DNA of 30,245 nt from Macrostomum lignano (Eukaryota), in NCBI GenBank assembly GCA_002269645.1, contig NIVC01004600.1:1-30245 (forward strand). The letters are read 5' to 3'. Position numbers and translations under genes: made by a program. The notes below the pieces were generated by a model. It did no database searches and was not told the DNA's origin. It saw nothing but the letters and a program-made list of their open reading frames with translations. The number at the start of each line of letters is the position of its first letter. The stretch's first letter is position 1. Shown here in pieces: positions 7,976 to 30,245 of the stretch.

Positions 7976-8911
7976 ATTTATCTACCTAAACAGTCCACAA
8001 CTACCACCCTATCATTCCATTTACCATAGTAACAGATTTTGTTCAGAAAAAAATTAGAGTCTATATTACCAAGCGTAATGCAAACAGAGTAATCTATAAG
8101 CACAAAAAATACGTACGAGTATAACAGACACAGGACTATAGCACAGATTATTTAGGCTAAACTGTCAAAGTCACTCTACATAATAAGATTAAGACTGGTG
8201 CCCAGCACCGAATATTGTTGTATAACGTATGTATATCATAAATTCTTCACTGACAACACAACCGACAACCTGAGCTCATTGTACGCTCGTATATTCATTC
8301 AGGACAAGCTTCATAGTATGGGGGGAACCATACCTTTCTGAACCAAAAGTATGTACATAATTAGCTCTTCACCCACCCCCCCCCGAGGGACTTTGTCTCA
8401 CTGTCAAGTGCATAGCACTCTGGCAATAAGGGGATTATTTTCCCAAACAATACTCTGGCTTAGCTAGACTGGGCCGGATTAACAAATCCACGAGGCTCAC
8501 TCACTGCTCCCCCCCCGCTCACGAGGAAGCAAATTCCCAAAATGTGGACAAGCACCTCACCTCACCTCATCCCAAATATGATCCCAAATCCCAATGAAAA
8601 TTATGCTTCTCCAGTCTCCCGATCCCTCGGAGACGCGGCATCGTGAGCTGCACGAAAATTTCCCCAGCGGCACTCGTCCCCATTGGACGGGATAAATCTC
8701 CCGCCAGCCAATAGGAAGAGGCTAGCGGGGATCGGCTGAGGGTTCGGGGCCTCCTCCCCGACTCTGTTTGGGATTTATTAGCCGCCCAGCTGGGGAGCGA
8801 TCGATTCTCCCACCAACATCCCATAAAAATCCCAACAACTAAAGAGCTCCTCCCACAGCCCACAAAATATCCACAAAGCTTGTTCCTAAATATACACAAA
8901 ATAATCTGAGA

Positions 8912-9076
8912 ATGCAGAAATCCCACAGCAAGCGGCTCGCCCCGCCAGAGGCCTGTCTGGCCGGCGTGGTGGCCGCCGAGGCCATCCCGGAGGGCCAGCG
9001 GACCGGACGGCTGGCCGAGGCGCCGCAGTTTGCCCGGACACTGCGCGACGAGCGACAGGTCGCGAACTTTGTAGCG
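8912..9076 (+). CDS. PRDM13: PRDM13 orthologue, exon 1 (start of PR/SET domain)
   Basis: ATG at 8912 with an in-frame TAA just upstream. Reads MQKSH...AEAIPEGQRTG...NFVA, then donor GTAAGT at 9077 (phase 0). It joins in frame to exon 2. Confidence 0.75.
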
Positions 9077-9145
9077 GTAAGTCTTTTAGTTGGCGTTTTG
9101 GGTAACAGACGAGAGTAACTTGACTAAATATCCCTGCGCTTAGAT

Positions 9146-10090
9146 GGGGGGGGGGCGAACTCCGGCCCGCGAATCCTCTCTATCCGGCCGTCGGGTCCTT
9201 TGAAACTTCACAATAGCAATCTGGCCCGCTCAAGGTTCGTCTCTTCTCTCCCCTCTTCTCTCCTCTTCTCTCGCCTCATCTCACCCCTCTTCTCTCCCCT
9301 CTTCCCTCCCCTCTTCTCTCCCCTCTTCTCTCCCCTCTTCCCTCCCCTCTTCTCTCCCCTCTTCTCTCCCCTCTTCTCTCGCCTCATCTCACCCCTCTTC
9401 TCTCCCCTCTTCCCTCCCCTCTTCTCTCCCCTCTTCTCTCCCCTCTTCCCTCCCCTCTTCTCTCCCCTCTTCTCTCCCCTCTTCTCTCGCCTCATCTCAC
9501 CCCTCTTCTCTCCCCTCTTCCCTCCCCTCTTCTCTCCCCTCTTCTCTCCCCTCTTCCCTCCCCTCTTCTCTCCCCTCTTCTCTCCCCTCTTCTCTCCCCT
9601 CTTCCCTCCCCTCTTCTCTCCCCTCTTCTCTCCCCTCTTCTCTCCCCTCTTCCCTCCCCTCTTCTCTCCCCTCTTCTCTCCCCTCTTCCCTCCCCTCTTC
9701 TCTCCCCTCTTCTCTCCCCTCTTCTCTCCCCTCTTCTCTCCCCTCTTCTCCCCTCTTCTCTCGCCTCATCTCACTTCTCTTCTCTCCCCTCTTCTCTCCC
9801 CTCTTCTCTCCCCTCTTCTCCCCTCTTCTCTCGCCTCATCTCACTTCTCTTCTCTCCCCTCTTCTCTCCCCTCTTCTCTCCCCTCTTTTCTCCCCTCTTC
9901 TCTCACCTCATCTCTCCCCTCATCTCTCCCCTCTTCTCTACCCTCTTCTCTCTCTCCTCTCTCCTCTTTTCTTTCATCCCATCTCTCGGCCCTCTCTTCT
10001 CTTCTCTCTCATTTTCAATTCCCTTCCCTTATCTGCAGGCATGAGCTGAATTCTTTATCTATAGCCCTTCAGGTAAAAAGGTTTGTCCGG
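9146..10090. mobile_element. Decayed hAT-family non-autonomous element in PRDM13 intron 1, enclosing the CT-rich tract
   Basis: The left end (G)10CGAACTCCGGCCCGCGAATCCTCTCTATCCGGCC...CTGGCCCGC resembles one end of the intact hAT at 14856-15789 and is also preceded by CTTAGAT. The right end GCCCTTCAGGTAAAAAGGTT (10064-10083) resembles the other end. The outermost TIR bases and TSD are not intact. Confidence 0.45.
9240..10010. repeat. Polypyrimidine tandem repeat, 12-bp period (CCCTCTTCTCTC / CCCTCTTCCCTC, occasional CTCGCCTCATCTCAC)
   Basis: About 770 nt nearly all C/T. It accounts for ORFs 9200..10147, 9208..9495 and 9497..9769. Confidence 0.95.
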
Positions 10091-10174
10091 GTAAACGGCG
10101 TGAGTAACTATTACTACTTTATGATATTTAAATGCTCCGTCATCTAAGTAGCTAAATGCGAATGCTTCCACCAG

Positions 10175-10463
10175 GTCCGCCCGGTGTTCCGTAAGCAGTC
10201 GACGGATGTCGGAGGCATCGTGGACGAGCAGGGCGGCTTGGCCTGGGTCACCCGGCTGCAGGGGGCGCGCGACCGGGCCGAGCAGAATCTCGAGCTGCTG
10301 CTACAGGAGGATCCGACTGAGGAGACGCCGGAGGGAACTCGGAGGGGATTTTGGTTGAGAGCGACTCGCGAGATTCGACCCGGAGAGCAGCTGCTGGTCT
10401 GGTTTTCCGACGCTTGCGCCATGCAGCTGGGAGTTCCCGTGCTGTCTGTGCTCAACATCAGAG
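10175..10463 (+). CDS. PRDM13: PRDM13 orthologue, exon 2 (PR/SET domain core)
   Basis: Acceptor CCACCAG ends at 10174. Reads ...[21 protein letters not shown]...[20 protein letters not shown]..., the PR-domain pattern (WxxxxxxARxxxEQNL; RxIxPGEELxVWY). Donor GTGAGC at 10464 (phase 1). Confidence 0.9.
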
Positions 10464-10469
10464 GTGAGC

Positions 10470-10804
10470 GAGATGGGATCGGAGATGGGATCGGAGATGG
10501 GATCGGAGATGGGATCGGAGATGGGATCGGAGATGGGATCGGAGATGGGATCGGAGATGGGATCGGAGATGGGATCGGAGATGGGATCGGAGATGGGATC
10601 GGAGATGGGATCGGAGATGGGATCGGAGATGGGATCGGAGATGGGATCGGAGATGGGATCGGAGATGGGATCGGAGATGGGATCGGAGATGGGATCGGAG
10701 ATGGGATCGGAGATGGGATCGGAGATGGGATCGGAGATGGGATCGGAGATGGGATCGGAGATGGGATCGGAGATGGGATCGGAGATGGGATCGGAGATGG
10801 GATC
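10470..10804. repeat. Perfect 12-bp tandem repeat (GAGATGGGATCG) x ~28, filling most of PRDM13 intron 2
   Basis: 335 nt with no mismatch seen. It accounts for the GDGI, PSPI, SEMG and SHLR ORFs. Confidence 0.97.
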
Positions 10805-10860
10805 CTATTTCGGAGATCAAATCTCAACATGATCAAATTGTTCCCTTCACCAACCCGCAG

Positions 10861-11185
10861 CGCATCACTGCTACCAGTGCCACCTGTGCCAGAGGAAGTT
10901 TCTCCACCCGAACGTGCTCAAGGCGCACCTGATGCACGCATGCACCAGCGACTCGCTGCACCAACATCAGCAGCACCGCCTGGCCCCTCCACCGCTCCAT
11001 CTGCCGTCGCCGCACCCGCTGCAGCTTCAACAGTTGCAGATGCAGCTCCAGCTGCAGCTGCAGCTTCAGCGCGGCATTCTCGAGTTCGCCGCCAACCATC
11101 GGGTCGCTCCTCCGCCGGACCTGCTCGCCCTGCTCCGCCGGTTCGGCCAGCAGCCTCCGTCATCTGCACCGACGCTGCCACCGCC

Positions 11186-11216
<31 letters not shown>

Positions 11217-11891
11217 CAGCTGATGTCGAAGCCGCGCCATCGCCGACCCTGGGAGGAGGATGATGACGTCATTGTCGATCACAACGACGACGAGATGCAA
11301 CAGCAGCAACAGCATCAGCATCATCGTAATCATCGGCACACGACCTCCTTCGACTGCAGCGTCGCGGGTAGCACAGCATCAACGTCCACACCTTCGTCGA
11401 CGCCGAAAAAGTTGGAGCCCCCGACTGTTGATCGCCAGCAGCAGCAGCAGCAGCGTCAGGAGAAGGACGAGGAGATGGCCGAGTCGCCGCTGATGCTCCG
11501 TGACGTCAGTCCGACTCTGTCCGCTGTCGCTGCGCCGTCAGCCATGGAGCTGCCCAGCGACGCGGAGCCTCTGGACCTGATCCCGCGCTCGCTGTACACC
11601 TGCAAGTCCAACAAGGGCCACCTGTGCATCTACTGCGGCAAAGTGTACTCGCGCAAGTACGGTTTGAAAATTCACCTGCGAACTCATACCGGCTACAAGC
11701 CGTTGAAATGCCGCGTCTGTCTGCGGCCGTTCGGCGATCCCAGCAACCTGAACAAGCACATCCGCTTGCACGCCGAGGGCGACACGCCGTATAGGTGCGA
11801 ATTCTGCGCCAAGGTGCTGGTCCGCCGGCGCGACCTGGAGAGGCATCAACGCTCGAGGCATCCGGACCGACTGATTATGATGGGGAAATAA
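10861..11891 (+). CDS. PRDM13: PRDM13 orthologue, exon 3 (N-terminal zinc finger, polyQ/polyP linker, three C-terminal C2H2 fingers); spliced CDS 1485 nt, 494 aa
   Basis: Acceptor CCGCAG ends at 10860. The first finger reads [25 protein letters not shown]. The C-terminus [83 protein letters not shown] is nearly identical to the PRDM13 finger array as recalled. Intron phases are consistent. Confidence 0.93.
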
Positions 11892-12268
11892 GCTCCAGAA
11901 ACCTTGATTTCTACTTATATGAGTAGCATAGTTAGTAAAACTTTATTTAACTTCCTTGAGAAGCTTATCAATAACTTTTTTAAATTATAACAATCCCTTT
12001 CATTATTGAAATTGCAACAAGACTCTAATAAAAAAATTTAACCAAGCATCCGTGCGTACATGTCTCTTGCGTGTTTTTGCTTTCAGTTCTGCTTGCTTTT
12101 CGTCACGTTTAAAATTATTGATCTCTTAAATATATGAAATTTAAATTAATAATAAATTAGCAAATGCACGATCATATTATTTCAATGCTATGCTATGCAT
12201 GTCAATGCTTCTTACCGATCAACATCCAGCGGCTTGTACTTTAATTTTCTGGCTTGAAGAAAATATCC

Positions 12269-12637
12269 ATTCTGTAATAGTAGGTAGAGATTTGTGTAAC
12301 AGTAGGTAGGGATTCTGTAACAGTAGGTAGGGATTCTGTAACAGTAGTTAGGGATTCTGTAACAGTAGGTAGGGATTCTGTAATAGTAGGTAGGGATTCT
12401 GTAACAGTAGGAAGGGATTCTGTAATAGTAGGTAGGGATTCTGTAACAGTAGTTAGGGATTCTGTAACAGTAGGTAGGGATTCTGTAACAGTAGGTAGGG
12501 ATTCTGTAACAGTAGGGATTCTGTAACAGTAGGTAGGGATTCTGTAACAGTAGGTAGGGATTCTGTAACAGTAGGTAGAGATTCTGTAACAGTAGGTAGA
12601 GATTCTGTAACAGTAGGTAGGGATTCTGTAACAGTAA
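12269..12637. repeat. Minisatellite, 21-bp unit GATTCTGTAACAGTAGGTAGG, ~17 copies
   Basis: Direct tandem repetition. It accounts for the minus ORFs 12212-12953. Confidence 0.95.
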
Positions 12638-12893
12638 GTGCAGGGCATTGTTGAAAGACTTCAACAATGTGAAATTTCAAGCTTTTAAGTGTCGAGCCAG
12701 AGAAAATGGCCTGCTGAATGATTTGGCAGTCTTGTCTTGTGTCTAATTTGTCTATGGCCGAAACCCACCGAAGGTAATACCGCTGTTCATGGGCGAATTG
12801 ATTGTCAACGAAAGCTTTCTCGCGAACTATTGTTATACAGCAATAATTTAACTTATATAAATTATAACAATAATTTATTGTTATAATTGAAGG

Positions 12894-13085
12894 ATGGCAC
12901 GTCAACATGACAAGCCGAAGTACTCCACCATGTGGGGCATGGAGTACACTCACAACGGTAATTTAGTCACACTGCGCAGTCATACGCCTAGCGTTAGATT
13001 TCGCGTTATTGGCGAGTCTCAAACGGAGACCAGGGATGCATTTGAGACTTTTGCGGTGCCCAACAAGCAACGATCTCTGCCTGTG
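12894..13085 (+). CDS. Putative exon 1 of the calmodulin-like EF-hand gene
   Basis: ATG at 12894, an EF-hand helix-E-like segment ETRDAFETFA, and donor GTGAGT at 13086 (phase 0). A phase-compatible acceptor CAG ends at 13689. The junction is inferred. Confidence 0.45.
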
Positions 13086-13129
13086 GTGAGTCTGGGGTTG
13101 CGGCGAATACAATGTTAGAGGGGCCTGCA

Positions 13130-13510
13130 AGAGCCGCCAGCAAGAAGCGCCAGCCGAAACTGGCGCCACCATAAGAGAGGCGCCACAAGCAATGAGGTGG
13201 CGCACACAGTAGTGAGGGGTGCCACCCAGCAATGAGAGGCGCCACCAGCAATCAGAGGCGCCACCAGCAATGAGAGGCGCCACCAGCAATGAGAGGCGCC
13301 AACAGCAATGAGAGGCGCCAGCAGCAATGAGAGGCGCCAGCAGCAATAAGAGGCGCCACCCAGCAATGGGGGCGCCAGCAATGAGAGGCGCCACCAGCAA
13401 TGAGAGGCGCCAACAGCAATGAGAGGCGCCAGCAGCAATAAGAGGCGCCAACCAACAATGAGGGGTGCCACCCAGCAGTGAGGGGCGCCATAAGCAATGA
13501 GGGGCGTCAC
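13130..13510. repeat. Minisatellite, ~19-bp unit CAGCAATGAGAGGCGCCAC, in the predicted intron
   Basis: Direct tandem repetition with a GGCGCC core and GGTGCC variants. It accounts for the minus ORFs 12963-13711. Confidence 0.92.
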
Positions 13511-13689
13511 AGGAACGAAGATGAAGGCAGTAAAAATAAAAGAGCTGCATTGACGTATGCTATTCAGCAGAAACATTATATTTATGATGCCTGATATACA
13601 AGCTACTAATGATAACACTATATGCATTTTTAGTAGAGAGAATGTACGAGCAATTTGGCATCCTGTTGAACTCACCCACCCGCAAGCAG

Positions 13690-14277
13690 TCTGAAGACGT
13701 CGCGTCGCCATTCCCGGACATCAAGCCCCAGAACTACGCCGCGCTGCTATTCAACTGCTACTACAAACGGCAGAGCGACAGGCGCCGACAGGGCGGCAGA
13801 AACCACAAGCACAACGAGCCGAAGCTGTCCGAGTCGGAGGTTGGCAGATTTTTGCGCACCTTCCACGGCGGCCTGTCGGCGCAGCGGGTGGCCACCATGG
13901 TCTCGTCCGCTACTGGGGCCGTAGTGAATCAAGTGGGTCGCAACGAGTTTAATATTCTATGCTCGGCTTACCTACCGGTGATTCCGTGCCTGGATTACCT
14001 GTTGGAATACCTGGAGGCTGACGCTGACGAAGTCGGCATCATCAACGGATCGGTTGCCGCGCAGCTGCTCGAGCGTCACGGCTTCCTTGAAGCTGCCCGT
14101 TGGCTTCGACGACGAAAGGAGCCGTCGGCGACGCCGATCGCCTATCCGCAGCTGCTGCACCTCATGGGCCTGCCAAGCTGCTCGCCTTGGAGCCAGCGGA
14201 GCTCGTCCGGCACCACTGGGACGACTGTATCCACCAACGGCATGGCGCCAGTGACGGTGACCTGCGATCGGCCTTGA
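13690..14277 (+). CDS. Degenerate calmodulin-like EF-hand protein, main exon (259 aa if joined to 12894-13085; alternatively from ATG 13642)
   Basis: LSESEVGRFLRTFHGGLSAQRVATMVSSATGAVVNQVGRNEFNILC aligns by eye to calmodulin EF1 helix F through EF2. DADEVGIINGSVAAQLLERHG aligns to EF3 and IAYPQLLHLM to EF4 (VNYEEFVQMM). GC-rich, coding-like ORF. Confidence 0.65.
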   Translation, partial: SEDVASPFPDIKPQNYAALLFNCYYKRQSDRRRQGGRNHKHNEPKLSESEVGRFLRTFHGGLSAQRVATMVSSATGAVVNQVGRNEFNILCSAYLPVIPCLDYLLEYLEADADEVGIINGSVAAQLLERHGFLEAARWLRRRKEPSATPIAYPQLLHLMGLPSCSPWSQRSSSGTTGTTVSTNGMAPVTVTCDRP

Positions 14278-14855: not shown

Positions 14856-15789
14856 CAGGGGTCGGCAACCTTTTTCCACTTGAGGGCCAGATGAGGTTTT
14901 CAGTTCAAGACGACGGGCCACAGGTCGCCCCCGATTATTTCACCCCCTGGGTCTTTCTTTACCCTCCAGTATCTGCCCCACTGGGTCTTTACCCTCCTGA
15001 ATCCGCCCCCTGGATCTTTACCCTCCAGTATCTGCCCCACTGGGTCTTTACCCTCCAAAATTCGGCCCCTTGGGTCTTTACCCTCCAAAATTCGGCCCCT
15101 TGGGTCTTTACCCTCCAGTATCTGCCCCACTGGGTCTTTACCCTCCAAAATTCGGCCCCTGGATCTTTACCCTCCAGTATCTGCCTCACTGGGTCTTTAC
15201 CCTCCAAAATTCGGCCCCTTGGGTTTTTACCTTCCAGTATCTGCCCCACTGTGTCTTTACCCTCCAGAATTCGCCCCTGGGTCTTTACCCTCCAGAATCT
15301 GCCGCCTGGGTCTTTACCCTCCAGAATTCGTCCCTGGGTCTTTACCCTCCAGAATTCGCCCCTGGGTCTTTACCCTCCAGAATCCGCCGCCTGGGTCTTT
15401 ACCCTCCAGAATCCGCCCCTGGGTATTTACTAAATTACTACATTTGTACTCCAGTTGTTGGCCAGCCACCACCTCACTTTCCTTCGCCCCCAGTTCCCCT
15501 ATTTCTATTCTATTCGAAAGTTTGAACTGATGTGCTGTCCGTCTTCTAGAGTTTGTAAACAGCCAGTTACACGATCAGTTCGTGTCTCATTACTAATTTG
15601 TCATTGAAATTGCCAATTGAGGAAAGAAATTCCCCATTTTAGTGCACAAAACTTTTGTGGGAGAAACAATGAAGTTACAATGAAGGTGCGGGCCGGATTA
15701 TAGTAATTAAGATTAAGGAAGTTCGCGGGCCGCATAGAAAGTCTTTGCGGGCCGGATCTAGCCCGCGGGCCGGAGGTTTCAGACCCCTG
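14856..15789. mobile_element. Non-autonomous hAT (Charlie/MER5-like) DNA transposon, 934 bp, with TIRs and 8-bp TSD
   Basis: Left TIR CAGGGGTCGGCAACCT versus reverse complement of the right end CAGGGGTCTGAAACCT (14/16 match). Identical 8-bp flanks CCTTAGAT at 14848-14855 and 15790-15797. Four GCGGGCCG subterminal repeats near the right end. No transposase ORF. Confidence 0.92.
14940..15425. repeat. Minisatellite inside the hAT element, 28-30-bp unit TGGGTCTTTACCCTCCAGAATCCGCCCC, ~17 copies
   Basis: Direct tandem repetition. It accounts for ORFs 14891-15530. Confidence 0.95.
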
Positions 15790-16415: not shown

Positions 16416-18039
16416 GTCTACAATATTGATAAGCTTCAGGAGTCAGCAGAATTGTTCCAGCGCTAGTGCTGCGGGATGATCTCCCCGAAGGTTCATTTTT
16501 ACTGAAGGACTTCGTAGGATCATTGTTGATGAACTTCTATTCTTCAGGTATGCTTAAATCGTGTTGAATGGTTTTCTAAAAAGGTCCGCAGCAGCATTAG
16601 TTCAGTATCCAAAGCCGAATACCTAAGTACAGCGCTGAGGTTAATCATTACAAAATATGCATGCCCATTAATCACGGTTTCATCGCAACAAATGTAAATG
16701 TAAATTCGCTACGCAGTTTCTCACCGAAAGTCATTGTGAAGGCAGACTGACAAACTGCAACTGCGTTTCCAGAATTTGCTTATGTATTGCTGCTGCAGGT
16801 AGAAATTCATCTGACGCGTACATGGCCCGCGTAAGAAATGGAGCTTCACTACTCTAAAAAGGACTTAATCTTTCGTCTGCTTAAGATAATAGTTGAGTTA
16901 CGGATGTCACGGGTCAAACATATTTTTAATTAAAAGATTGATGCCCTAAAAACGCAGAGGTATGTTAAACGAAAGCAGATCAAGTTGAAGAGGAATGAGA
17001 GACAGCATATGCTTGAAATATTAGAATGTTTTGAAACCCCGATTGAACGTTTTCACAATAGGCTAAAACTAGAATGCGTTAACACACCAAAGAGGACTAT
17101 TCTAGTCAGTAAACGCAGTCGATCAAGGATGTAAGCGTCGTATGAATTCATGAATATGCATCGATAAAATGGCCACCAAATTGATTAGTCTTACATCGCC
17201 TGACATGCTCGCATTTTTTCACAAAGTGATAAACTTAAATTGGTGCGCCATTTGCGTCTGCGACCGCGAGTAAAATGATCTTTAAGCATGTAAAATGTTG
17301 CGTTCCAATACACGCTGTTTAGGCGGTTAAGACTAATGTCAAAGCGCAATTAACACATTTAATGTAATGTCATCAGACGTGCGTAATAGTTGTACTCGTA
17401 AAACTTGTGAAAGCGTAGATCAGCTTGGATACCGCGCTCACGTCGGATTGGCCACCCCCGTACTTTATAAGCCGAATTTTGTGCCTTGTGTCAGTTTGTT
17501 TTGCGCGCTTTACTTCAGGTGTTACTCGTACTTGAAAGAATTGGTAAGTTAAAAAAAAATATGTCTTTTAAATGAGATTTGATTGTTCTCCATGCTGAGT
17601 AACGTTTTACATTTTAATATAGTTATTTCACTCATTGCATGAACAAAGTTTGAATTAAGTTATGTTATACTACAATATTAGACATCAGAGATAAGATCGA
17701 TAGCTTTAATATAAACCTCTAGCATCCCATGTAGTATGGCTCGCAATTGAAGTGCCGATTTATGCTCTCGATTAGATCATAACTAATCGAATCGAAACTA
17801 AGAACTCCGACTTCCCTGGTCTTCTCTCGAAGCAAACGAATTGATTCTAGACTCCATCGGTTTGTGTTTATCCCTTACAAGTATTTAGATATCCTCGTCG
17901 CTGTTATTGCATGCTATGGTATTTGTAGTCGTTTTGTCGGTGTAATGCATGGTGCAGTTTTATTATAAAGATAATTTTTACACTTTTTAAAATTTCTTTT
18001 AAACTTCAAATTTTTTCAAAGGAAACTAAGAAGACAAAG

Positions 18040-19487
18040 ATGACATCGCGCTCTCTCACCATTCCTGCGGTGGGCCATCCATACAGCCTTGGTGCGCTGT
18101 ACAACAGCAGGACCAGCCAAATCATCCCCGGAGTCAAGTTATTCACCGCCGAGCAGATGAAGAAGATGCTGGATGCATCTAAAAACATCAGCATGGAGAC
18201 CGATATCGTAACAGAAACGTCAGCGAACAGTAAAAACCTGAGCACAAAAGTGAGTGGAAATCTGTCGCTGTCAATTCTATCGGGACTGGTGTCCGCTAGC
18301 GGCTCCGGGAACCATCAAACTGCATTAAAAGAGAAAAGAGAGACGGAGAGCGCCATATTTCGACTGCAAGTTCATGGAAAGTATGAGGAACTTGTTCTCC
18401 CACCGGGTTTGAAGCTGAAGAGCTCAGCGAGCTACAAAGATGCCACTCACGTAGTGTTGGGAATTCAGTACGGCGGGGCTGCTCTGTTCTTTTTCGAGCG
18501 GGACAAAGAAGACTCCGCAACGAGCGACAAAGCCGGAGGCGGTCTAAAAGCTCAGATTGGCAAGTTTGCATCGGTGGTCAGCATCTCTGGAGCTGCCTCG
18601 CTTGACATGACGTCGGAGGAAACGAAAGTCATGCAGAAGATCCGAGTTGCCTACAAAGGAGACTTCCACCTGGCCAGCCCACCGACCAACTTCATTGAAG
18701 CCATGAAGTGCATTCAAACAATCCAAGCTGCTGAAGCTAGATCGCCACTGACGGTCAACCTGCTTCCTCTGTCACTGCTGGTTGAAGACGCTCCACCAGC
18801 TCCCCTGCCACTACCGCGCACGTGCATCTCTAAAACTGTTCGCTGCTACGATGTGCTGAAAGAAGCTCTGACTACTCTGCAGGAAATTACTTACAAGCTG
18901 AGACCGACAGCGTGGACTCACGTGGTGAAGAAGCTGGAAGCGGAACTTCGGGAGCTCGAATCATTCAAGTCTTCCCTTGATGATGCTGTGAGGGAAGCTG
19001 TTCTAGATCACACGGCTGAGCCCGCTAATCGTGCGAAAAAATTGAGTTAAAAACGGGCCTTTTCGATGCCGGAAAAAAGTACGCTCACCTACAGGAATGG
19101 GCCACCGCAGTCGCCGATGCCGGTGACGTTCTGGTTGTGATTTCCAATAAGTTCCGGGAGGCTGGCGCTCAGATAATTCAAAGCCAAGCTCAGAGAGCCG
19201 AATTCATCATGAGGAGCATGACAGAACCCAGCCGAAAGATGTACTGCCTGTCTTGCCCAATGAAACTGTTTGAACTGCAAAACTTCAAGCTCCAAGCTGG
19301 ATTGAAACTCTGGAGCGATGAAGAACTGGAGAAGAAGTTTTACAAAACGTTTGTAAAATACTGCCCCACGACAGGAAATCAAAAACAGAAATTTGAGCAA
19401 TCTCTAGCCGCTGTTGAGCAATCCGAGGTTTCTGATTCTGATGCATCCGGAGTGCAGGTGATCTTCCAGAACCTCTCATTAAATTAA
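18040..19487 (+). CDS. Stonustoxin/verrucotoxin-like MACPF/CDC pore-forming protein 1 (MACPF/CDC, helical and thioredoxin-like regions, no PRYSPRY). One frameshift at the A6 run 19036-19041; 482 aa if one A is restored.
   Basis: The N-terminus LTIPAVGHPYSLGALYNSRTSQIIPGVKLF matches SNTX (LVMPALGRPFTLGMLYDARREKLIPGFSLF). MACPF signature ATHVVLGIQYGG. YKGDFHLASPPTNFIEA matches FHGDFLLESLPTTFEDA; PLTVNLLPL matches PMKVWLAPL. A second frame is open from 19029 to 19487 and continues the similarity. No introns in the CDS. Confidence 0.85.
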
Positions 19488-19804
19488 AATTAAATTTGTG
19501 ACACCTCCGTTCGTGAGAAACGACAATATTTCATTGTGAAAACGTGAACTACCGAGTTTGCAAACTAAAGCGCAAACTTTTAGACAAGACCGGAAAGTAG
19601 ACTATTTTTGCCTTACACATTTTCTCACCTTTCTATACCAAGTGGAGATAGCTTATGGATCCGCTTGTATGCGCCTTACTCCTTCGCGATAAATGATTAA
19701 TCATTGTTTTATTTCATTCTCATTAATTGATTAGTTTTTGTTTTCACTAAATATTCAGATCCGCTTTGCTTTACATTTTCTACTCACGTGTACTTATTCA
19801 GTAG

Positions 19805-20135
19805 GAGAGTGGAGTTTTGGTTTGTAGCCTATCGATTAGGCGGTTAGCAACCCACTCAGAACAATTTGTGCCCTTGAGCAAGACACCCAGCTCTGCATTG
19901 CTTCAGTTCACCCAGCTGTAAAATGGGTGCCAGCATTAGCTGGGGTAATTGAGGCTGTGTGTGGCGACCCCCAGCCCTTGGACTGAACAGCCGTACGCAG
20001 CCTTCAGATGCGCCGCGCAATAGCTGCGGCTGAGCTGTCGGTTGCACATCTAGGTAGGTGGTATCAATTAAAATAATAATAATTATTATTATCATTACTA
20101 TTATTGCTATTATCATTAATATTATTATTATTACT
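19805..20135 (+). mobile_element. CORE-SINE (MIR-like core) with (AAT/ATT)n tail, between the two toxin-like genes
   Basis: 19867-19928 GTGCCCTTGAGCAAGACAC...TTGCTTCAGTTCACCCAGCTGTAAAATGGG resembles the CORE domain (CCTTGGGCAAGTCACTT...CCTCAGTTTCCTCATCTGTAAAATGGG). There is a degenerate box B-like GGTTAGCAACCC upstream and a trinucleotide A/T tail. Confidence 0.7.
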
Positions 20136-20609
20136 AATAGTCGTAAAATACACTCTAATTAAATGTTAATTGGAATCAGATTGGTAAAAGTACTATAAAT
20201 ACGATTTCTCATTGTACTCGTAATATATACTCTCAGTTCTAGTAACAAAATCTTTACATAGTACGAGTACTATTAAAATATTTATGAATATGAAACAGGC
20301 ATATTTTGTTCGCTGTCACTAAACCTTAAGCATGTAATCCAGCTTCGTTTTTTTATTTTCAATAAAAGTTAATAAAAAAATACGGATTGTTAAACAAAAA
20401 ATGTTTTTCTTCTTTATTTTGGATTAGTGCACTAGGAATTATATCAGCGGCATACGATAGCTTGTATCTTCTTCTTAGTATAATTTTAGTACTCTCGAGA
20501 TAAAACATTGACCCTTATTGGGGAAGCTGCTAGGCTTATTAAATGGCGGAACTCGCACTAACAACCATCGGCCAAACATTTCAGCACAATCCTGACGAAC
20601 GACTTCAAC

Positions 20610-22637
20610 ATGCAAACTCAACCGGAGTGCATCCCGTCTCTGGGCCGGCCGTTTCAGCTCGGACAGCTGTACGACATCCGACAGCACCGGATCATTACAC
20701 AGTCGGCCTGGCCATCTGATCGAATTCGGAAAATGACGACTCGGCTGGATGATGCGCCCAGCGTGAGGTTTTCCCTGGACTACGAGTACAGCTCGAAGCG
20801 CCGAGCGGAGCAGCTGGGGCTGAACGCCCAGCTGAGATTTTGCATTGAGTTCAAAGCGTTGTGGTGGACAGTGTACGAGAAGACAATGACAGGATCAGCA
20901 AAATACGTCACCGAGGCAAGCTCCACCGAGACCAGTGGAAGCGTCACTTTGCAGTACGACGTGAAGGGTGCGTTTGAGGAGCTTCAGTGCTGCAACGAGC
21001 TTGTAGACAATGAGAAGAAGTTACTAAGCACTGGTGCAACGCACGTTGTGACAGGAATCCGGTACGGAGGCAAGGCGTTCATTGTCTGCAAAGGCTGGTC
21101 CAATGCGTCCAGCTTCTTCGAGCGAGCAACATCTGACTGTCATGAACTGGTAGATTGGAAGGTGGAACAGTGGATCAGAGATGCTGGGCAGTCTGCCAGA
21201 TCGTTCGCTCAGTTTGGCTTGCCGAACCGCTCTTCAAGTTCTGGCAGCTATCAGATCGAGTGTCACACAGACTTCAAGCAGCCAAGGAAGACAATGAGAG
21301 AGCCACCGGATGTTTTAGAGTATTTTAAATCCTTGGATTCGAGGGATGCGAATCAAGCAATGGAAATCCATCTCACTCCATTGCGCTACTTTTGCCCGTC
21401 GGTTCCAGCTTCAGTCCCAATGACAAAAACGCAACATCTGGAAGATGCCTGCCAGTACCTTCAAGCGTTGAAGGCCGGCTTTGAACATTCCGAGCAACTT
21501 TTGGACAAGATTAGCCGGGAGGCAGAGTTAAACACTTCAATCGGAGAGACACTGCACGGATACAAGAGAGACCTGGACACTCATGTGAGCGAGTACACAC
21601 AGCGGATGCAACAAAGTTTTGTGAATCATCGCACTTCGGACGAGTTTGCTGAAGCTCATCACGCCGGCAGTTTAGACAGCGTCTTCACCTACACCAGCAT
21701 GGACACCTCTTTGAACATGTTTGGTCGCCAAACTACCGACCTCTGCGATTTAAGTGCAAAGCTTCGACAGGGTATTGACGCTACAAGCGCTGAAGAACTT
21801 GAGATGAAAGCAGAAAGATTGGCAAAGGAAATAGAGGACCTTTTTAGCATACACGACTCAAGCAAGCAGCTTGAAGAGCAAATGTCCCCAGGACAGAGCC
21901 AATTTAGAATTAAGCGCACCAGAATCGAAGAAAGAAATCGGGATGATCGGTCCTGCATCACTTGGTGCATCAGGTGTCGAAGTACGTGCCATGAAGACTG
22001 TGGCTATTCCAATAACGAGGATAAAGCAAAGTGCTGTGCCATGAACAGTGATGGATACTGTAAAGAGTGCGGCTGCTACTGGAGACTTCACCGAAACACC
22101 AGCACCGAACAGAGGGAGTTTGAATACTACGAATCTGTTCCCATTGACAAAGTGAGCAAGAAGTATGGAGAAAATACAAACCAGCGCGGTGCTGCGAGGC
22201 GTATCAAGTATCACCTAGGAATGGACGCGAAGATGGCTTTGCAGAAAACGGCCTACAAACTCGTGAGTGCTCACAGGTGCTTCAAAGGCCTGCACCAGGG
22301 CGTCGACTTGGATCAGTTCATTAGAGACAAGCTTCGGTCCAAGCGGCTGGATCCGGAAGATTCCTCCAAATTGATTGAACTGACCAAAGCTATCGATGCA
22401 CGAGTTGAGGATAGAACCGATTACGCTAGGTTTGAATGGCAGTCACGACTGCCGGAACGTCCGACAACGCCGCCGACATTTGGTGCAGTCGGTGCAGACA
22501 GTACAGGCAGTGGTACGGCTCGTATTGGTGCAGCAGTCTTTGGTGCCGGTTCATCCGATTTGTATCGTTCTTTGTACGGTGGGCGACAAAATCGGGATTC
22601 AAATCCCCAGTCTGATCCGGATTGCACTATTAGTTGA
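20610..22637 (+). CDS. Stonustoxin-like MACPF/CDC protein 2, 675 aa, with helical region, Cys/His-rich module and C-terminal CaaX (CTIS)
   Basis: Uninterrupted ORF. CIPSLGRPFQLGQLYDIRQHRII matches the SNTX N-terminus. It has the GSAKY motif, MACPF signature GATHVVTGIRYGG, HTDF and AMEIHLTPL. The C-terminal module reads CITWCIRCRSTCHEDC...KCCAM...YCKECGCYWRLH. Ends GAT TGC ACT ATT AGT TGA. Confidence 0.9.
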   Translation: MQTQPECIPSLGRPFQLGQLYDIRQHRIITQSAWPSDRIRKMTTRLDDAPSVRFSLDYEYSSKRRAEQLGLNAQLRFCIEFKALWWTVYEKTMTGSAKYVTEASSTETSGSVTLQYDVKGAFEELQCCNELVDNEKKLLSTGATHVVTGIRYGGKAFIVCKGWSNASSFFERATSDCHELVDWKVEQWIRDAGQSARSFAQFGLPNRSSSSGSYQIECHTDFKQPRKTMREPPDVLEYFKSLDSRDANQAMEIHLTPLRYFCPSVPASVPMTKTQHLEDACQYLQALKAGFEHSEQLLDKISREAELNTSIGETLHGYKRDLDTHVSEYTQRMQQSFVNHRTSDEFAEAHHAGSLDSVFTYTSMDTSLNMFGRQTTDLCDLSAKLRQGIDATSAEELEMKAERLAKEIEDLFSIHDSSKQLEEQMSPGQSQFRIKRTRIEERNRDDRSCITWCIRCRSTCHEDCGYSNNEDKAKCCAMNSDGYCKECGCYWRLHRNTSTEQREFEYYESVPIDKVSKKYGENTNQRGAARRIKYHLGMDAKMALQKTAYKLVSAHRCFKGLHQGVDLDQFIRDKLRSKRLDPEDSSKLIELTKAIDARVEDRTDYARFEWQSRLPERPTTPPTFGAVGADSTGSGTARIGAAVFGAGSSDLYRSLYGGRQNRDSNPQSDPDCTIS

Positions 22638-23086
22638 ATTTGAATTTTATAATTGTATACGAGTTGACAATTTAATTTAGATTGATCGAAAAGAAGGCAA
22701 AATAGGACGTTACTTCCGAATACGAGCTTAGTAGAATCGAATTATTCTAAATTTAACTGGCTATATATTAGTAATAGCATACGTAGTACCGTCCTGTTTG
22801 CAAATGAATCTTATATAAACTTTAGAGACCCAAGAACGATTACTTACCACTATTTTAGCTATCAGTATTCACCCATGTAATTTATATTATTGAACGTAGC
22901 TTATTCGCATCTTACGCTAATGTTTTACTCTGTAGCTTATATATATTACGAGCAAATCGCACGGTTTGTTACTCTTTTTCAGTATTCGGGTTATAAAATT
23001 AGTATTCGGGCGCAATAAATCACTGTTTCGATGGCGTGTAACTTGGGGTGCATAAAGTGGTCCATTCTAAGACGCTGTCAGGTACA

Positions 23087-23255
23087 GGGCACCGTGTGGG
23101 GCACCGTTTGGGGCACCGTGTGGGGCACAGTGTGGGGCACCGTGTGAGATATAGGGCACCGTATAGGGTATGGGGACATAGGGCACCGTGTGGGGTATGG
23201 GGCACCGTGTGGGTATGAGGGTATGGGGCACTGTGTGGGGTATGAAGCACTGTGT
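23087..23255. repeat. Degenerate minisatellite, ~12-bp unit GGGGCACCGTGT
   Basis: Direct repetition with a GGCACC core, interspersed with GGGTAT. Confidence 0.85.
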
Positions 23256-26244: not shown

Positions 26245-27319
26245 TTACAGCGCTTCAGGATCGCTGTGACCGTCGTCCATCATTTCAAGTGTTGCCATGG
26301 TGATAGCAAGGCCCATCACCTCGTCGACAAACGCGGAGACGCTCTTTGTGTCGTCCATGATGCTGAGGCCGGCGATGCCAGCGAACTCCCCTCCGCTGGC
26401 CGCGGCAATCTGCGACTCACGGCGTCGATCGCGTGCCATCTCTTTCTGGATCATGACGTCCAAGGACTCGCGTCGCAGCTCCTCCACAATCCCAGCCGTA
26501 GTGGTCGCCTCGCTGATGGTTGACTGCTGGTCGATGCTGGCCGAGCGCGACGATCGAGCGGACGCGGTGGCGGACAACAAGGCGGAAGCACGAGAACCAC
26601 GCCGTTTCGGGCTGACCTCAACTCTACACTGCGTCTGACACTTGTCGTCGGCGGTCTGGAGGCTGAGGGTGTAACAGCCGCTGTCTGAGAGCATCACACG
26701 GTCGATGGCCAGCGAGTAGGACATTCCAGACCGGGTCACTCTATGCCGTGGTCCGTACGTGATCTCCCGACTGCCCTTTGTCCACATGGCAATCGCGCGA
26801 CCTTCGGCAACAAAGATTTTCGTCTCAGTAGAAGCGAATCGCCTTCGTCGATCTCCAAAATACGCGGCAGCGGCTGCTCGATGCGCATCGGCTCGCTGCT
26901 GTAGTCCGTAGCTGAGTTCTGCGTTGCACTGGCTGACTCAGCCGATGGTTCGGCCGCGCCGGCAGCGACAGCCCGCTTGGCAGTTGACGAGGAGTCGTTG
27001 GCCACCCAGAGGAAGGCCGAGTGTTTGGTACGGCCATACGTGTTGAACGCGAGCACCCTATAGAGGCCCTCGTCGGCTCGAGTCACGCCATGAATGGTCA
27101 GCCGGGTTTTTCCTGGTTCAGGCGACTCGGCTTGGACCCTAGCTGGTACGAACGGATCGTCGTCGAGAAGCTCCAAGCCATCCTTCTCCCATTTGAACGC
27201 TGGTGATGGCTGGCCGGAGGCTTCGGCGATCAGCAATACAGTCTGGCCCTGCTCCACTGTCTGGCTGGACAGGGTGCGTGTGAACTTCGGGATGCGGACG
27301 TCCATTGGTGGTGGGCGCT
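26245..27319 (-). CDS. Twitchin/projectin-like giant kinase, last exon: post-kinase Ig5, Ig6 and C-terminal tail (frameshift ~26826)
   Basis: Acceptor TTTCCACAG at 27320. I-set motifs PKFTRTL...F.WEKDG...D.GLY.V.AFN.YG. The second Ig continues in another frame (ETKIFVAEGRAIAMWTKG...DSGCYT). Stop TAA at 26247-26245. Confidence 0.85.
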
Positions 27320-27708
27320 CTGTGGAAAGAAAATCGGTTTATATATAGCTACGAGCGTACAAACGTACGATTATAAACTTGTGGCCATACGAAAGGTCGC
27401 ATGTAGCTTGTACAAATTGAAATTTGTTCCGTAATACCAGTAATTGCTCAATTTTTAAATTCCACTAGATTTGCATGCAGTTGAGCAGCCATTGAGTAAA
27501 ATCTAAAATCTGCTTTAGTAAAGTCTTCATCCATAAGATCTTGAACTCCTGCTCACACTTGAGTACTCGAGTTCAAGCAATTTCTTACATCGAGCTAGCT
27601 GCAACTCTTGAGCAATATTATAGTTCACTTTATTCATAAGCTAAGATTAAACTGAGAAGAAATAGTATTTCCTCTAAAACAGTCCTTATCTTCGAATTTG
27701 TCACTGAC

Positions 27709-28344
27709 CTGCCTCGATGACCCTGCAGGTAGTAGTAGCCTCTCCAGCCATGTTGAATGCAACAGCAGAGAACTCTCCCAGTTCGGCTTGGGTGCAGTTA
27801 AGCACTAGCAGCTCCTGGAAGTCGCCAACATTTTTCACTACAAACTTGCCGCCACTGTTGATTGGCCGGCCGGCGTGGTACCAGCGAACAATCGGCCTTG
27901 GCTGGCCACTAACAGAGCACGCCAGGCTAAATGTCGACTCCAAGTCGACGGCTGTGTCCCTCAGTTTAGCGCTGAACTGCGGCACCCGTTTCAGCGCCAA
28001 CTGCGGTAGAGTCGGCATCGGCTGCTGCTGAGAGGAGACGGCGCGGACGCGCAATGCGCACTCGACATCGTCGAGTCCGTGACGCCCTTCCGCTCGGCAG
28101 GTGTAGACGGCACAGTCCTGCTGCAGCGTGGTCTTGAACCGCAGCATGCAATGGCCAGTCTCTTTGTCAGCTTGCACTTCGATTCTATCCGTGCTGATTA
28201 GCTCTTCTGAGCGGTTCTTTAGCCAGCGCACTCGGTCCCAGGCGCCAGCGCTTCGGTCCAGGAAGCATTCCAAGCGAGTTGCCTGGCCCTCAATGGCTGT
28301 GACGTCCAGCGGGCCGCTTCGGAAGCGCGGACTCGGACCAGGTG
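27709..28344 (-). CDS. Twitchin/projectin-like kinase exon: post-kinase Ig3 and Ig4
   Basis: Acceptor ATTTTAG at 28345 and donor GTCAGT at 27708 (phase 1). Two I-set domains (PRFRSGP...WLKN...DCAVYTC; PQFSAKL...WYHAG...ELGEFS). Confidence 0.9.
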
Positions 28345-28431
28345 CTAAAATAAGCAAAAAATATCGTTGTTTTTTACTATTTAAAAACAATATTGAAATG
28401 AGAGAGCTCTCACCAATTCGTCTGAACTTAC

Positions 28432-28755
28432 CAGAAAGTGCTAGTGTGACTGTAGTAACTGCCTCTCCGTAGATGGAGCTCGCTTTCAGAGAATATTCGC
28501 CGCAGTCGGCAGCAGTCGCCTGAACTATCTCGAGCACGTGCTCGCTGCCTTCAGCGTATACGCGGCATCGATCGGACAGTTCCAGCGGCCGTCCATCGCG
28601 GCACCATCGTACGCTCGGCCGGGACGCTGCAGATGTCACCACGGCGTGGAACCGAGCGTTGGTGCCTGGCACGACCATCTGCGACAGCGGCGGCAGCTGG
28701 ATAATCGGAGCCAGATCAGCCGGCTTCTCCGAGACGGCAACCGAGGATGTTGATT
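28432..28755 (-). CDS. Twitchin/projectin-like kinase exon: post-kinase Ig2
   Basis: Acceptor CCACCAG at 28756 and donor GTAAGT at 28431 (87-nt intron). Reads V.WCRDG...DCGEYSLKASSIYG. Confidence 0.9.
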
Positions 28756-28836
28756 CTGGTGGAATTGTTTTAATTTAGTGGTAAATTTTAGTGTTGATCA
28801 TTGACTAAAAAAGAAAAATAGATATTTTTAGCTTAC

Positions 28837-29700
28837 TCTTGACGCTGACTCGCGCGGAATCCTCTGCTCGACCGCTCTGGTTGACCACTCGGACGCTCCA
28901 GGTTCCTTGATGTTTTTCACTAAGACTCGGCACGTTGACAGTAGTCTCTCCCAGTTTGGTGCGCACGACCACGGAACTGTCGCTTTCGTTGATAGGCACA
29001 TCGTTCAGCGTCCAAACAGGTGTTGGTTCCGGATATCCATTGAAACGGACGCTGAAACTAAGAGAGCTTCCGGTAGCTTGGGTGACGCTGCGAAGCTGAT
29101 CAAGGATCCGAGGCGCCTCAGGCTGTCTATCGAGTCTCACGCTGAGGCTGTTGTCATTGTTGCTAGCATCCTGGCAGGTGCCGCAATGCGCCAGCCGCCC
29201 GATTGGCAGCACGGTCTCGCGGAAACGGCGGCTCTCGGCGATTCTCTGGCGAAGCGAAATTGGATGCAGACGGACGTCGAAGCGCTCCTCACGTGGTGAC
29301 ATGTTGAGCCAGGGATGGTTCAGGCACTGCTCAGCTGTCATCCGCTGTGTTGGCAACGCCACGATAAGTCGCGCAATGAAATCTTTAGCTGTGTCGGAAA
29401 CGTGGGCCCACATCTCGCTGTCAAAGCTGAATTTGCAGTCCCGAATAGCCTGGAAGCGTTGCTGACTGCTTCACCACCGAATGGAGCCAGCCCAGTCAGC
29501 ATGATGTGGCAGAGCACGCCAAGCGCCCACAGATCGGTTGAGCAGCCGCAAGGTTCTTTGCTGACCATCTCTGGCGACAGATACTCCAGGGAGCCAAAGT
29601 TGGCGGTGAAGCTGCGACCCTGCTCGAGACGTTGGCTAAGGCCAAAGTCGATCAGTTTGCAGTCTGATCCGCTGGTTGAAACGAACATCACGTTTTCGGG
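28837..29700 (-). CDS. Twitchin/projectin-like kinase exon: kinase C-lobe, C-terminal regulatory tail and Ig1 (frameshift ~29468)
   Basis: PENVMF...KLIDFG...GSLEYLSPE...TDLWALGV...LTGLAPFGG; AKDFIARL...RMTAEQCLNHPWL. The tail VLPIGRLAHCGT...LDRQPEAPR resembles the twitchin tail (LPPLGRISNYSS...WDRSEAQPR). Donor GTAAGC at 28836. Confidence 0.9.
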
Positions 29701-29785
29701 CTAAAATTACAATTCGAGCATTAATGAAATATACTCCGATCTATTATTAATAACAATTAAAACGCAAGAGTTCGTTTTTGCGCAC

Positions 29786-29927
29786 CTTAACATCCATATG
29801 CACGTAGTTTTTGCGGTGCATGAAGTCTAGACCTTCGCAAACCTGCCTGACGGTAGAGCTAAGCGTTCGCTCCGTCACTGAGTAGTTAGAATCCACGTAC
29901 TTGTCAAATAGATCACCACCGGCAATG
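29786..29927 (-). CDS. Twitchin/projectin-like kinase exon: hinge to catalytic loop
   Basis: (F)IAGGDLFDKY...VRQVCEGLDFMHRKNYVHMDVK. Flanked by an 82-nt and an 85-nt GT-AG intron with consistent phases. Confidence 0.92.
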
Positions 29928-30009
29928 CTAGAATATGATTGGTGACATTCACTTAGAGCTATGTCAGTTGAAAAGTAGTGTTTAAATGGGATAAACGTGC
30001 AACACTTAC

Positions 30010-30245
30010 AATTCCAGCACCAGAACTGTGTCAGTTCGGGAGAAGATGGCTTCGTGCAGGTAGAGCAGCCTGGCGCGTGTTGCAGCTCGCTCATGGTATC
30101 GATTTCATGTTGAACAGCCTCCTGCCGCTGTGCCGCTTGGGGATAAATTTTCCGGCCCAAGTTCGGCCGCTAGTCTTTTCAATCAATCGGCAGACAACGC
30201 CGAAGCCACGCGTCCTAGCTCTTCGCAAACAATGTACTTGGTCTC
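30010..30245 (-). CDS. Twitchin/projectin-like kinase exon: kinase N-lobe (runs off the window; three frameshifts)
   Basis: Four reading-frame segments assemble into KYIVCEELGR(G)GFGVVCRLIEKTSGRTWAGKFIP..AAQRQEAVQHEIDTMSELQH..RLLYLHEAIFSRTDTVLVLE. Breaks at about 30209, 30138 and 30072. Donor GTAAGT at 30009. Confidence 0.8.

Follow-up and report, generated by a model that had tools for sequence, protein, structure and literature searches.

Does a tandem of two pore-former-like genes in a flatworm encode the complementary subunits of a two-component system, or two proteins that act independently of each other? The question is raised by two plus-strand open reading frames (ORFs) of Macrostomum lignano, a model flatworm capable of transgenesis: ORF1 at 18040-19050 (336 amino acids, aa) and ORF2 at 20610-22637 (675 aa). 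The stretch of DNA analysed here, called the window, is the entire contig NIVC01004600.1 of 30,245 nucleotides (nt) in assembly GCA_002269645.1, which is the Mlig_3_7 draft of this free-living flatworm (PMC10733133). An earlier note on this DNA had proposed a pair of stonustoxin-like MACPF/CDC genes that form a candidate two-component pore-forming system; our analysis bears out the family assignment and finds nothing beyond adjacency for the pairing. The reading that we favour as a whole, with even confidence, is that the two genes are independent paralogues of the stonustoxin (SNTX) branch, with ORF2 a farnesylated, GTPase-less cytosolic MACPF effector and ORF1 probably intact in the window. 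All features given below are on the plus strand unless stated otherwise.

Two MACPF proteins of the stonustoxin type

When searched against all PDB sequences, ORF1 matches only the alpha and beta chains of SNTX (4WVM), with expectation values (E) of 3.4e-32 for 4WVM_A and 9.9e-32 for 4WVM_B over residues 3-232 and 3-261, respectively. ORF2 finds the same two chains, 4WVM_B at E 1.7e-13 (residues 8-349) and the other at E 1.8e-08. In both partners the similarity to SNTX begins at residue 2-8, so the SNTX-type N-terminus is present in both ORFs, and a family motif of the type L-G-R-P-F-x-L-G-x-L-Y lies at the very N-terminus of each. The MACPF signature has the general form (Y/W)-G-(T/S)-H-(F/Y)-x6-G-G and takes the form T-H-V-x6-G-G/A in SNTX. 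The translations read THVVLGIQYGG in ORF1 (18445-18477) and THVVTGIRYGG in ORF2 (21039-21071), both of the form T-H-V-x6-G-G, and the column block ATHVV.GI..G is invariant in an alignment of four M. lignano sequences. Based on the similarity to 4WVM, the MACPF domain covers about aa 1-265 of ORF1 (18040-18834) and aa 1 to about 265 of ORF2 (20610-21404), and the SNTX helical domain that follows is visible in the two ORFs only through the 4WVM alignment and a family profile.

A comparison with hidden Markov models (HMMs), as the earlier note had proposed, gave a divided answer. The Pfam model MACPF_SNTX (PF24674, cut-off 27 bits) gives ORF2 a sub-threshold 20.3 bits and is silent on ORF1, and Pfam finds no family at E up to 0.1 when ORF1 is repaired as described below. 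This model is insensitive, as accepted relatives also fall below its cut-off (P0002 with 23.3 and P0021 with 25.9 bits). Our own profile, built from 76 family N-termini, scores ORF1 at 201 bits (profile positions 4-324) and ORF2 at 98 bits.

We also predicted the structure of ORF2 by AlphaFold2 from a 102-sequence alignment; a prediction from the single sequence was unusable, with a predicted local distance difference test (pLDDT) score of 38. In the alignment-based model the MACPF core (aa 10-160) has a pLDDT of about 90, and helices at aa 62-100 and 164-201 lie between the strands of the sheet, i.e. a MACPF fold with two helical clusters. Foldseek, which had likewise been suggested as a check against SNTX, ranks 4wvm_B first (E 2.3e-09, probability 1.0), and all 50 of the 50 matches listed are MACPF/CDC-type pore-forming proteins. 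The beta-periodic hydrophobic moment, a crude measure, peaks at z = 2.0-3.5 in the transmembrane hairpin regions TMH1 and TMH2 of both ORFs, with TMH2 of ORF2 being of low confidence in the model.

ORF1 and ORF2 share only 24% identity (E 1e-13) and are unrelated in their C-terminal halves. Neither contains a PRY/SPRY domain or a thioredoxin-like domain (Thioredoxin_11) according to Pfam, and inspection of the N-termini reveals no hydrophobic leader; the starts align with residues 1-3 of SNTX, which is leaderless itself. By sequence, ORF1 and ORF2 are members of the SNTX branch of the MACPF/CDC superfamily, and this is the firm part of our interpretation. They are presumably anciently diverged paralogues, and their products are presumably cytosolic, since they have no leader peptide. 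The descriptive part of the earlier note is confirmed in these points: two genes on the same strand, highly diverged with different C-terminal halves, both with the SNTX-type N-terminus and the MACPF signature, and neither with a PRYSPRY domain or a signal peptide.

A GTPase-less member of a MACPF-GTPase family

ORF2 (20610-22637, 675 codons and a stop) is an intact single-exon coding sequence (CDS), according to both the ORF call and the annotation of its sister copies. Three sister contigs of the same assembly, NIVC01003849.1, NIVC01003077.1 and NIVC01002314.1 (L002, L003 and L004 below), were found through the protein cluster of ORF2, and each is ~95.5% identical to positions 17834-22900 of the window. 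The window, L002 and L003 carry an unbroken ORF2, which in L004 is cut by one private single-base deletion. GenBank lists the sister copies as hypothetical protein BOX15_Mlig004669g2, 'partial' (PAA49540.1, PAA53511.1), and we found no paper mentioning Mlig004669. Of the two genes ORF2 is the one that is clearly live; its frame is unbroken in three of the four assembled copies, and its annotation draws on transcript data.

Its transcript probably begins by spliced-leader (SL) trans-splicing at 20585. The sequence TTTCAG at 20579-20584 matches the SL acceptor motif [T/C]TNCAG of M. lignano (PMC8629364), and the annotation has the 'partial' CDS begin at 20586 even though the open frame reaches back to 20562; this places the exon start at 20585, one base after TTTCAG. 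If the SL, ending in ...TTGCATG, is joined at 20585, its ATG does not share the frame of the ORF2 start at 20610 and would open an overlapping upstream frame.

We scanned ORF2 against 1.84 billion cluster representatives and obtained 638 matches at E up to 0.001, only one of which, its own gene product (P0001), lies below 1e-30. Many of the matches are proteins of 1150-1300 aa that align twice, with aa 1-160 and with aa 430-530, and 65 of the 150 matches listed align with ORF2 in two or three separate stretches. Pfam was run on seven of these 65 proteins, and all seven have the architecture MACPF_SNTX, Stonustoxin_helical, Thioredoxin_11, fn3 and a septin/AIG1-like GTPase, in this order. The GTPase in such proteins is trailed by an unannotated C-terminal region with a coiled coil and a module of eight Cys and two His (8Cys/2His), and the shorter library matches consist of the GTPase and this C-terminal region alone. 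The family proteins among the library matches are P0013-P0161. Named members of this large family are known from teleosts, a bichir, bdelloid rotifers, the crab Scylla and M. lignano itself, e.g. M. lignano PAA60539.1 (1163 aa) and PAA80612.1 (1211 aa), Gouania XP_028328301.1 and Scylla KAK8378025.1. The full-length members of M. lignano are P0015 and P0020, with family loci at L005 10001-13636 and L006 10001-15885.

ORF2 has both ends of this architecture. Its MACPF domain is followed by a helical region with a coiled coil (aa 273-424, 21426-21881), the first part of which aligns with the FAT-like helical domain of SNTX; the alignment to 4WVM_B extends through aa 349, and the model has long helices there at low confidence. 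The beta-rich 8Cys/2His module comes next (aa 431-511, 21900-22142), as detected by tblastn with P0002, P0013, P0018 and others and by the model. Then follow a C-terminal helical region common to the family (aa 512-612, 22143-22445; residues 769-1001 of P0002 align with 21708-22451, and the model shows helices), a tail of low complexity and predicted disorder (aa 613-671, 22446-22622; pLDDT <50 over aa 602-675) and a CaaX box (22623-22634).

The module is complete in ORF2. All ten near-invariant Cys and His residues are retained as putative ligands, namely C453, C456, C460, H461, C464, C475, C484, C487, C489 and H494, and the pattern C-x2-C-x3-C-H-x2-C...C...C-x2-C-x-C-x-W-x2-H is matched. The module is modelled as a small beta-rich domain with pLDDT 86-98. 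It has no PDB sequence match at E up to 10 and no Pfam or NCBIfam relative, and Foldseek on the whole of ORF2 is dominated by the MACPF domain. The module was not found in ORF1 by tblastn with family members. No GTPase, fn3 or thioredoxin-like domain is detected by Pfam in either ORF, and tblastn with full-length members found no remnant of them in the window. One further GTPase-less form is the cichlid protein A0A3B4FRS8. On sequence grounds ORF2 is a GTPase-less derivative of the MACPF-GTPase family that has preserved the MACPF, helical and coiled-coil parts together with an entire Cys/His module. In the collection of papers searched we found none on this family, on its Cys/His module, or on any link of stonustoxin to GIMAP, AIG1 or septin GTPases. 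A word-indexed protein search gave nothing useful for ORF1 alone, and with the four-sequence M. lignano alignment it returned only P0001, its filter of 8000 candidates missing even P0015 and P0020.

One relative, P0014 (2130 aa, from an assembly in ENA), has two complete sets of MACPF_SNTX, helical and thioredoxin-like domains before the fn3 and GTPase part. It represents either a genuine fusion with tandem MACPF domains or a gene model merged from tandem genes, and it bears on whether paired MACPF domains recur.

ORF2 ends in ...DPDCTIS after a low-confidence tail of about 60 residues, and CTIS is present in all copies. Good CaaX ends are found in six other match clusters (seven of about 165 when ORF2's own is included): CVIM, CVIQ, CNIL twice, CIIV and CIIF, of which CNIL is the box of human GBP2. 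Their bearers are P0023, P0039, P0041, P0086, P0137 and P0160, short MACPF-only members being among them. CTIS itself is the farnesylation box of human GBP1 (bioRxiv 10.1101/2021.06.16.448779), and ORF2 is predicted to be farnesylated at this box. CaaX ends are commoner in the family than the frequency of Cys alone would suggest, and this pattern suggests that prenyl anchoring is a repeated theme in it.

Is ORF1 a gene or a relic?

ORF1 as read in the contig has 336 codons and a stop (18040-19050), which cover the SNTX-type MACPF domain and the start of the SNTX helical domain according to 4WVM and the family HMM. A possible TATA box (TATAAA, 17964-17969) lies 71 nt 5' of its ATG. The stop at 19048-19050 falls a few bases past an A6 run (19036-19041), where the frame is broken by -1. 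The continuation is found in the +2 frame at 19042-19487, supported by the ORF and by the sister comparison; this frame is open from 19029 for 153 codons and ends with TAA at 19485-19487, and two ATTAAA sequences (19478-19494), overlapping and after this stop, may serve as variant poly(A) signals. One added A in the run fuses both frames into an ORF1 of 482 aa that ends at 19487 and contains the rest of the helical domain and a tail of ~100 aa matching no domain model. The family profile aligns colinearly over the break up to position 406, with the part after the break adding about 0 bits. We had expected a thioredoxin-like domain in the tail; neither Pfam nor a purpose-built family profile supports one.

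All three sister contigs have A7 at the break site. The sister copies differ from the window by exactly one A there, which rules out a short intron in place of a frameshift at 19050. All three also carry an extra A directly after the ORF1 ATG (ATGAACATCG against ATGACATCG), so that a TGA stands in frame immediately before the conserved N-terminus, and rescue of the sister copies by an upstream exon or by the ATG of the SL is thereby ruled out. The ATG of the window sits exactly at the start position of SNTX and its relatives.

Could ORF1 be a decaying pseudogene in all copies, with ORF2 alone functional and the tandem a relic of an old duplication? Each copy has a disabling 1-nt indel, the A6 in the window and the extra A with its in-frame TGA in L002-L004, and no gene is annotated for ORF1 in any of the four contigs, even though transcript data went into the annotation. 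The types of error in the assembly bear on both indels. Across 5 kb a single substitution separates the sister contigs from one another, and they carry 0, 4 and about 7 private deletions of one base. Such deletions are the characteristic assembly error here, at about one per kb in two of the sister contigs, and hence the A6 of the window is a plausible artefact, being exactly of this type. The extra A of the sister copies is probably real, because it is a shared insertion while the errors seen in the region are deletions; this supports decay in the sister type. Against decay in the window stand the 153-codon open frame after the break, the canonical position of the ATG, and selection. When the window type is compared with the sister type in the repaired frame, the part ahead of the break has a ratio of non-synonymous to synonymous substitution rates (dN/dS) of 0.33 and the part behind it one of 0.27 (44 synonymous changes on 337 sites against 48 non-synonymous changes on 1097 sites in sum), which indicates that both parts have been coding. 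We therefore consider a pseudogene in all copies somewhat unlikely. The window ORF1 probably has an unbroken frame in the actual genome, and the start of the sister type is probably disabled. ORF1 is a shorter family member, much closer to canonical SNTX and under purifying selection.

It follows from the private deletions by which the sister contigs almost exclusively differ that frame breaks in Mlig_3_7 gene models are often assembly artefacts. The deletion sites in L003 and L004 correspond to window positions 18113, 19064, 19352, 19717-18, 19835, 19968, 20414, 20911, 22699 and 22747, and the 447-aa annotation PAA58965.1 is the product of one private single-base deletion. The divergence between the window and the sister contigs is also a strong mosaic: each 250 nt holds 27-33 substitutions over 17834-18584, which comprises the promoter and 5' half of ORF1, and only 1-8 from position 20084 on. 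Gene conversion may lie behind this pattern, or else an old haplotype limited to the 5' region of ORF1.

Pairing and origin of the two genes

SNTX is a heterodimer of paralogues (PMC10566576), and the earlier note took ORF1 and ORF2 for complementary subunits of a similar kind, i.e. an obligate, co-expressed alpha/beta-like pore former assembling into MACPF hetero-oligomers. All four assembled copies preserve the tandem same-strand arrangement. No SNTX-like gene lies within 10 kb of the full-length paralogues P0015 and P0020, and hence the pairing is specific to this locus. The genes are 1.1 kb apart, as the earlier note had it, only when ORF1 is read over its frame break to 19487. This spacer, from the ORF1 stop to the ORF2 exon, contains an ATT-rich simple repeat of 60 nt (20074-20133) and shrinks to about 1.04 kb without it, at the edge of the 1-kb repeat-adjusted cut-off used for M. 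lignano operons (PMC8629364). Together with the SL acceptor of ORF2, this makes co-transcription of the two genes possible.

The remaining evidence speaks against a dimer. The two SNTX subunits are ~50% identical (PMC10566576), as against 24% here. ORF1 scores 153 bits with P0020 and 145 bits with P0015 but only 58 bits with ORF2, so that the two ORFs are not mutual nearest paralogues. The four-domain plan of an SNTX subunit is not found, with PRYSPRY absent and the thioredoxin-like domain undetectable, and ORF2 has a coiled coil, a Cys/His module and a CaaX box of its own. The frame of ORF1 is defective in every assembled copy and has never been annotated, and the synonymous divergence (dS) between window and sister copies is unequal, 0.14 in ORF1 vs 0.019 in ORF2. 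We consider the two-component proposal quite improbable: its support does not go beyond adjacency, and the low identity, the closer kinship of ORF1 to other paralogues and the broken frame of ORF1 all count against it. Most likely ORF1 and ORF2 act independently and form no obligate pair, and they may still be co-transcribed. That they are the two halves of one disrupted full-length gene is ruled out, as each has a complete MACPF N-terminus.

The earlier note had also described both CDSs as intron-free among spliced neighbours and taken this as a hint of retroposition or horizontal acquisition. Both coding regions do lack introns, ORF2 being a single uninterrupted exon, and the neighbours are spliced (a 259-aa product annotated over 1384 nt and a 706-aa product over 2678 nt); ORF1 is not an intact CDS over the span given in the note. 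SNTX-like genes are among the candidates for fish-to-fish transfer (PMC12107551), which might be cited in favour of an acquisition. Against it, P0020 is a single exon of 3636 nt and P0015 has one intron, located after the fn3 domain and outside the MACPF part, so that few or no introns are a trait of the family in this genome; the clustered sntx genes of the stonefish have only three exons as well (PMC10566576). Neither stop codon is followed by a poly(A) remnant or an A-tract, target-site duplications not having been searched for. The GC contents of ORF1 and ORF2 (0.50 and 0.51) equal that of the neighbouring coding sequence, the nearest relatives of ORF1 are M. lignano genes, and the family is spread across Metazoa. 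An origin by retroposition or horizontal transfer is hardly credible in view of these data.

Possible functions

The mechanism that we favour concerns ORF2. The protein would be farnesylated and held at the cytosolic face of a membrane, where its coiled coil and Cys/His module may drive assembly or target recognition. Its MACPF domains would then oligomerise, and the helical clusters (~aa 62-100 and 164-201) would convert into amphipathic beta-hairpins that perforate this membrane, with cell-autonomous defence or regulated cell death as the possible outcome. That ORF2 may act on membranes from the cytosolic side is suggested by the missing leader, the prenylation box and a module that elsewhere stands beside a cytosolic GTPase. 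The immune and cell-death roles named in the earlier note among other options fit the evidence better than a venom role, and they stay inferential.

Several observations weigh against this reading. The missing leader is no proof of a cytosolic life, because SNTX also lacks a signal peptide and still reaches the venom. The farnesylation and the trans-splicing of ORF2 are both read from motifs. The ORF2 model has pLDDT <50 at aa 164-174, 195-215 and 304-391, i.e. in the second helical cluster and the helical region. ORF2 is also fast-evolving: its MACPF part is at most 37% identical to any 50%-cluster representative listed, and its 27 changes between the window and the sister copies give a dN/dS of 0.65, a value that does not demonstrate constraint. 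A member so divergent and fast-evolving may no longer form pores. As to ORF1, its last ~90 residues match no domain model, it has no gene annotation in any of the four contigs, and with a frame defect in all four assembled copies it may be a simple pseudogene.

The loss of pore formation can be stated as an alternative of its own, in which the MACPF fold of ORF2 serves a scaffold or signalling protein, as in astrotactins and other non-lytic MACPF proteins. The highly divergent MACPF domain, the insertions in both helical clusters with low model confidence there, and the sub-threshold Pfam score are consistent with this. The intact signature, the amphipathic beta-periodic stretches retained in both clusters and the core modelled at a pLDDT of ~90 speak against it, and we regard a non-lytic ORF2 as unlikely.

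A further alternative is that ORF1 and ORF2 are secreted or stored toxins for defence or prey capture, released without a classical leader. SNTX-like transcripts lacking both signal peptide and SPRY are the top-expressed homologues of pore formers in Glycera venom glands (PMC4202326), SNTX-like sequences are also known from nemerteans (PMC6410017), and ORF1 resembles these short forms. ORF2 fits this picture poorly: both its CaaX box and its Cys/His module, which usually partners a cytosolic GTPase, suggest that the protein resides inside the cell. A toxin role of the pair is, in our view, improbable.

A more far-reaching version of our favoured mechanism can be formulated. ORF2 and its GTPase-bearing relatives could represent undescribed cytosolic, lipid-anchored perforin-like effectors of flatworms, rotifers, crustaceans and fish, in which the MACPF domain would be brought to membranes under a switch of GTPase and zinc module, as a MACPF counterpart of the GBP-gasdermin logic in cell-autonomous immunity, and a minimal ORF1 would be co-transcribed and co-assemble with ORF2. 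We would be rather surprised if this version proved right in full.

Surroundings of the locus

The contig is ordinary animal DNA, with a zinc-finger ORF, a kinase/I-set gene and many minisatellites. The upstream flank has a C2H2 zinc-finger ORF (10914-11891), and the downstream flank has a spliced gene for a protein kinase with I-set immunoglobulin domains on the minus strand (26245-30160). In the sister contig L003 the latter gene is part of a 7876-residue fn3/I-set protein that looks like a titin/twitchin-like giant muscle protein. Dense minisatellite arrays are located at 5080-5830, 7100-8030, 9200-10840, 12210-12950, 13000-13700, 14890-15530 and 23087-23255. They give rise to long spurious ORFs in several frames and to extreme GC and AT skews, e.g. 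a GC skew of -0.72 at 9001-10000.

Comparison with known systems and implications

Stonustoxin and neoverrucotoxin (4WVM; PF24674, PF21109, PF18078 and PRY/SPRY) share with ORF1 and ORF2 the N-terminal MACPF motif at residue 1, the T-H-V-x6-G-G/A signature, the absence of a signal peptide, a helical domain after the MACPF domain and an arrangement as tandem paralogues. They differ in having PRYSPRY and thioredoxin-like domains, in the ~50% identity of their subunits and in lacking the coiled coil, 8Cys/2His module and CaaX box of ORF2. The stonefish genes also have three exons, whereas ORF1 and ORF2 have no introns and no known venom context.

The SNTX-like transcripts of Glycera, nemerteans and cerianthids lack B30.2/SPRY and signal peptide like ORF1 and ORF2, and two divergent SNTX-like clades within Glycera have tentatively been read as subunits (PMC4202326). 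These reports concern transcripts from venom or mucus tissues, whereas here we have a genomic tandem pair in a free-living flatworm, and the GTPase-family module and CaaX box of ORF2 are not reported in the Glycera and nemertean papers (PMC4202326, PMC6410017). We found no paper on SNTX-like members in flatworms, and none in the collection searched links stonustoxin to flatworm genes. SNTX-like proteins without SPRY and signal peptide are hence already known from Glycera, nemerteans and cerianthids, and the tandem pair adds a member of that kind. What is new is the architecture of ORF2, a MACPF domain with a GTPase-family module and a CaaX box and no GTPase.

With the MACPF-fn3-GTPase-Cys/His family ORF2 shares both ends, i.e. 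the MACPF domain and the complete C-terminal module, and CaaX ends recur in that family; the thioredoxin-like, fn3 and GTPase domains of the family are absent from both ORF1 and ORF2. Human GBP1 offers an analogy only. It has the identical CaaX box CTIS, and in the relatives of ORF2 a GTPase is coupled to a membrane-acting module, but GBPs have no sequence homology to ORF2, and ORF2 has no GTPase. GBP1 recruits caspases or gasdermin, while by this analogy the effector in ORF2 would be the MACPF pore former itself.

To our knowledge, work on SNTX-branch MACPF proteins has dealt almost exclusively with components of fish venom. Because leaderless SNTX-type proteins occur in many animals without venom, an older role in immunity has been suggested (PMC12107551). 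The locus described here gives this question a concrete architecture, a leaderless MACPF protein with a GTPase-associated module and a farnesylation box. If ORF2 does not perforate membranes, the locus is one more lineage-specific expansion of a known family. The integrity of ORF1 is doubtful, and we regard the locus as a good lead for studying perforin-like proteins inside cells, in an animal open to experiments. If it is true that ORF2 perforates membranes from the cytosolic side, the locus would provide a tractable system for studying the function of intracellular perforin-like proteins.

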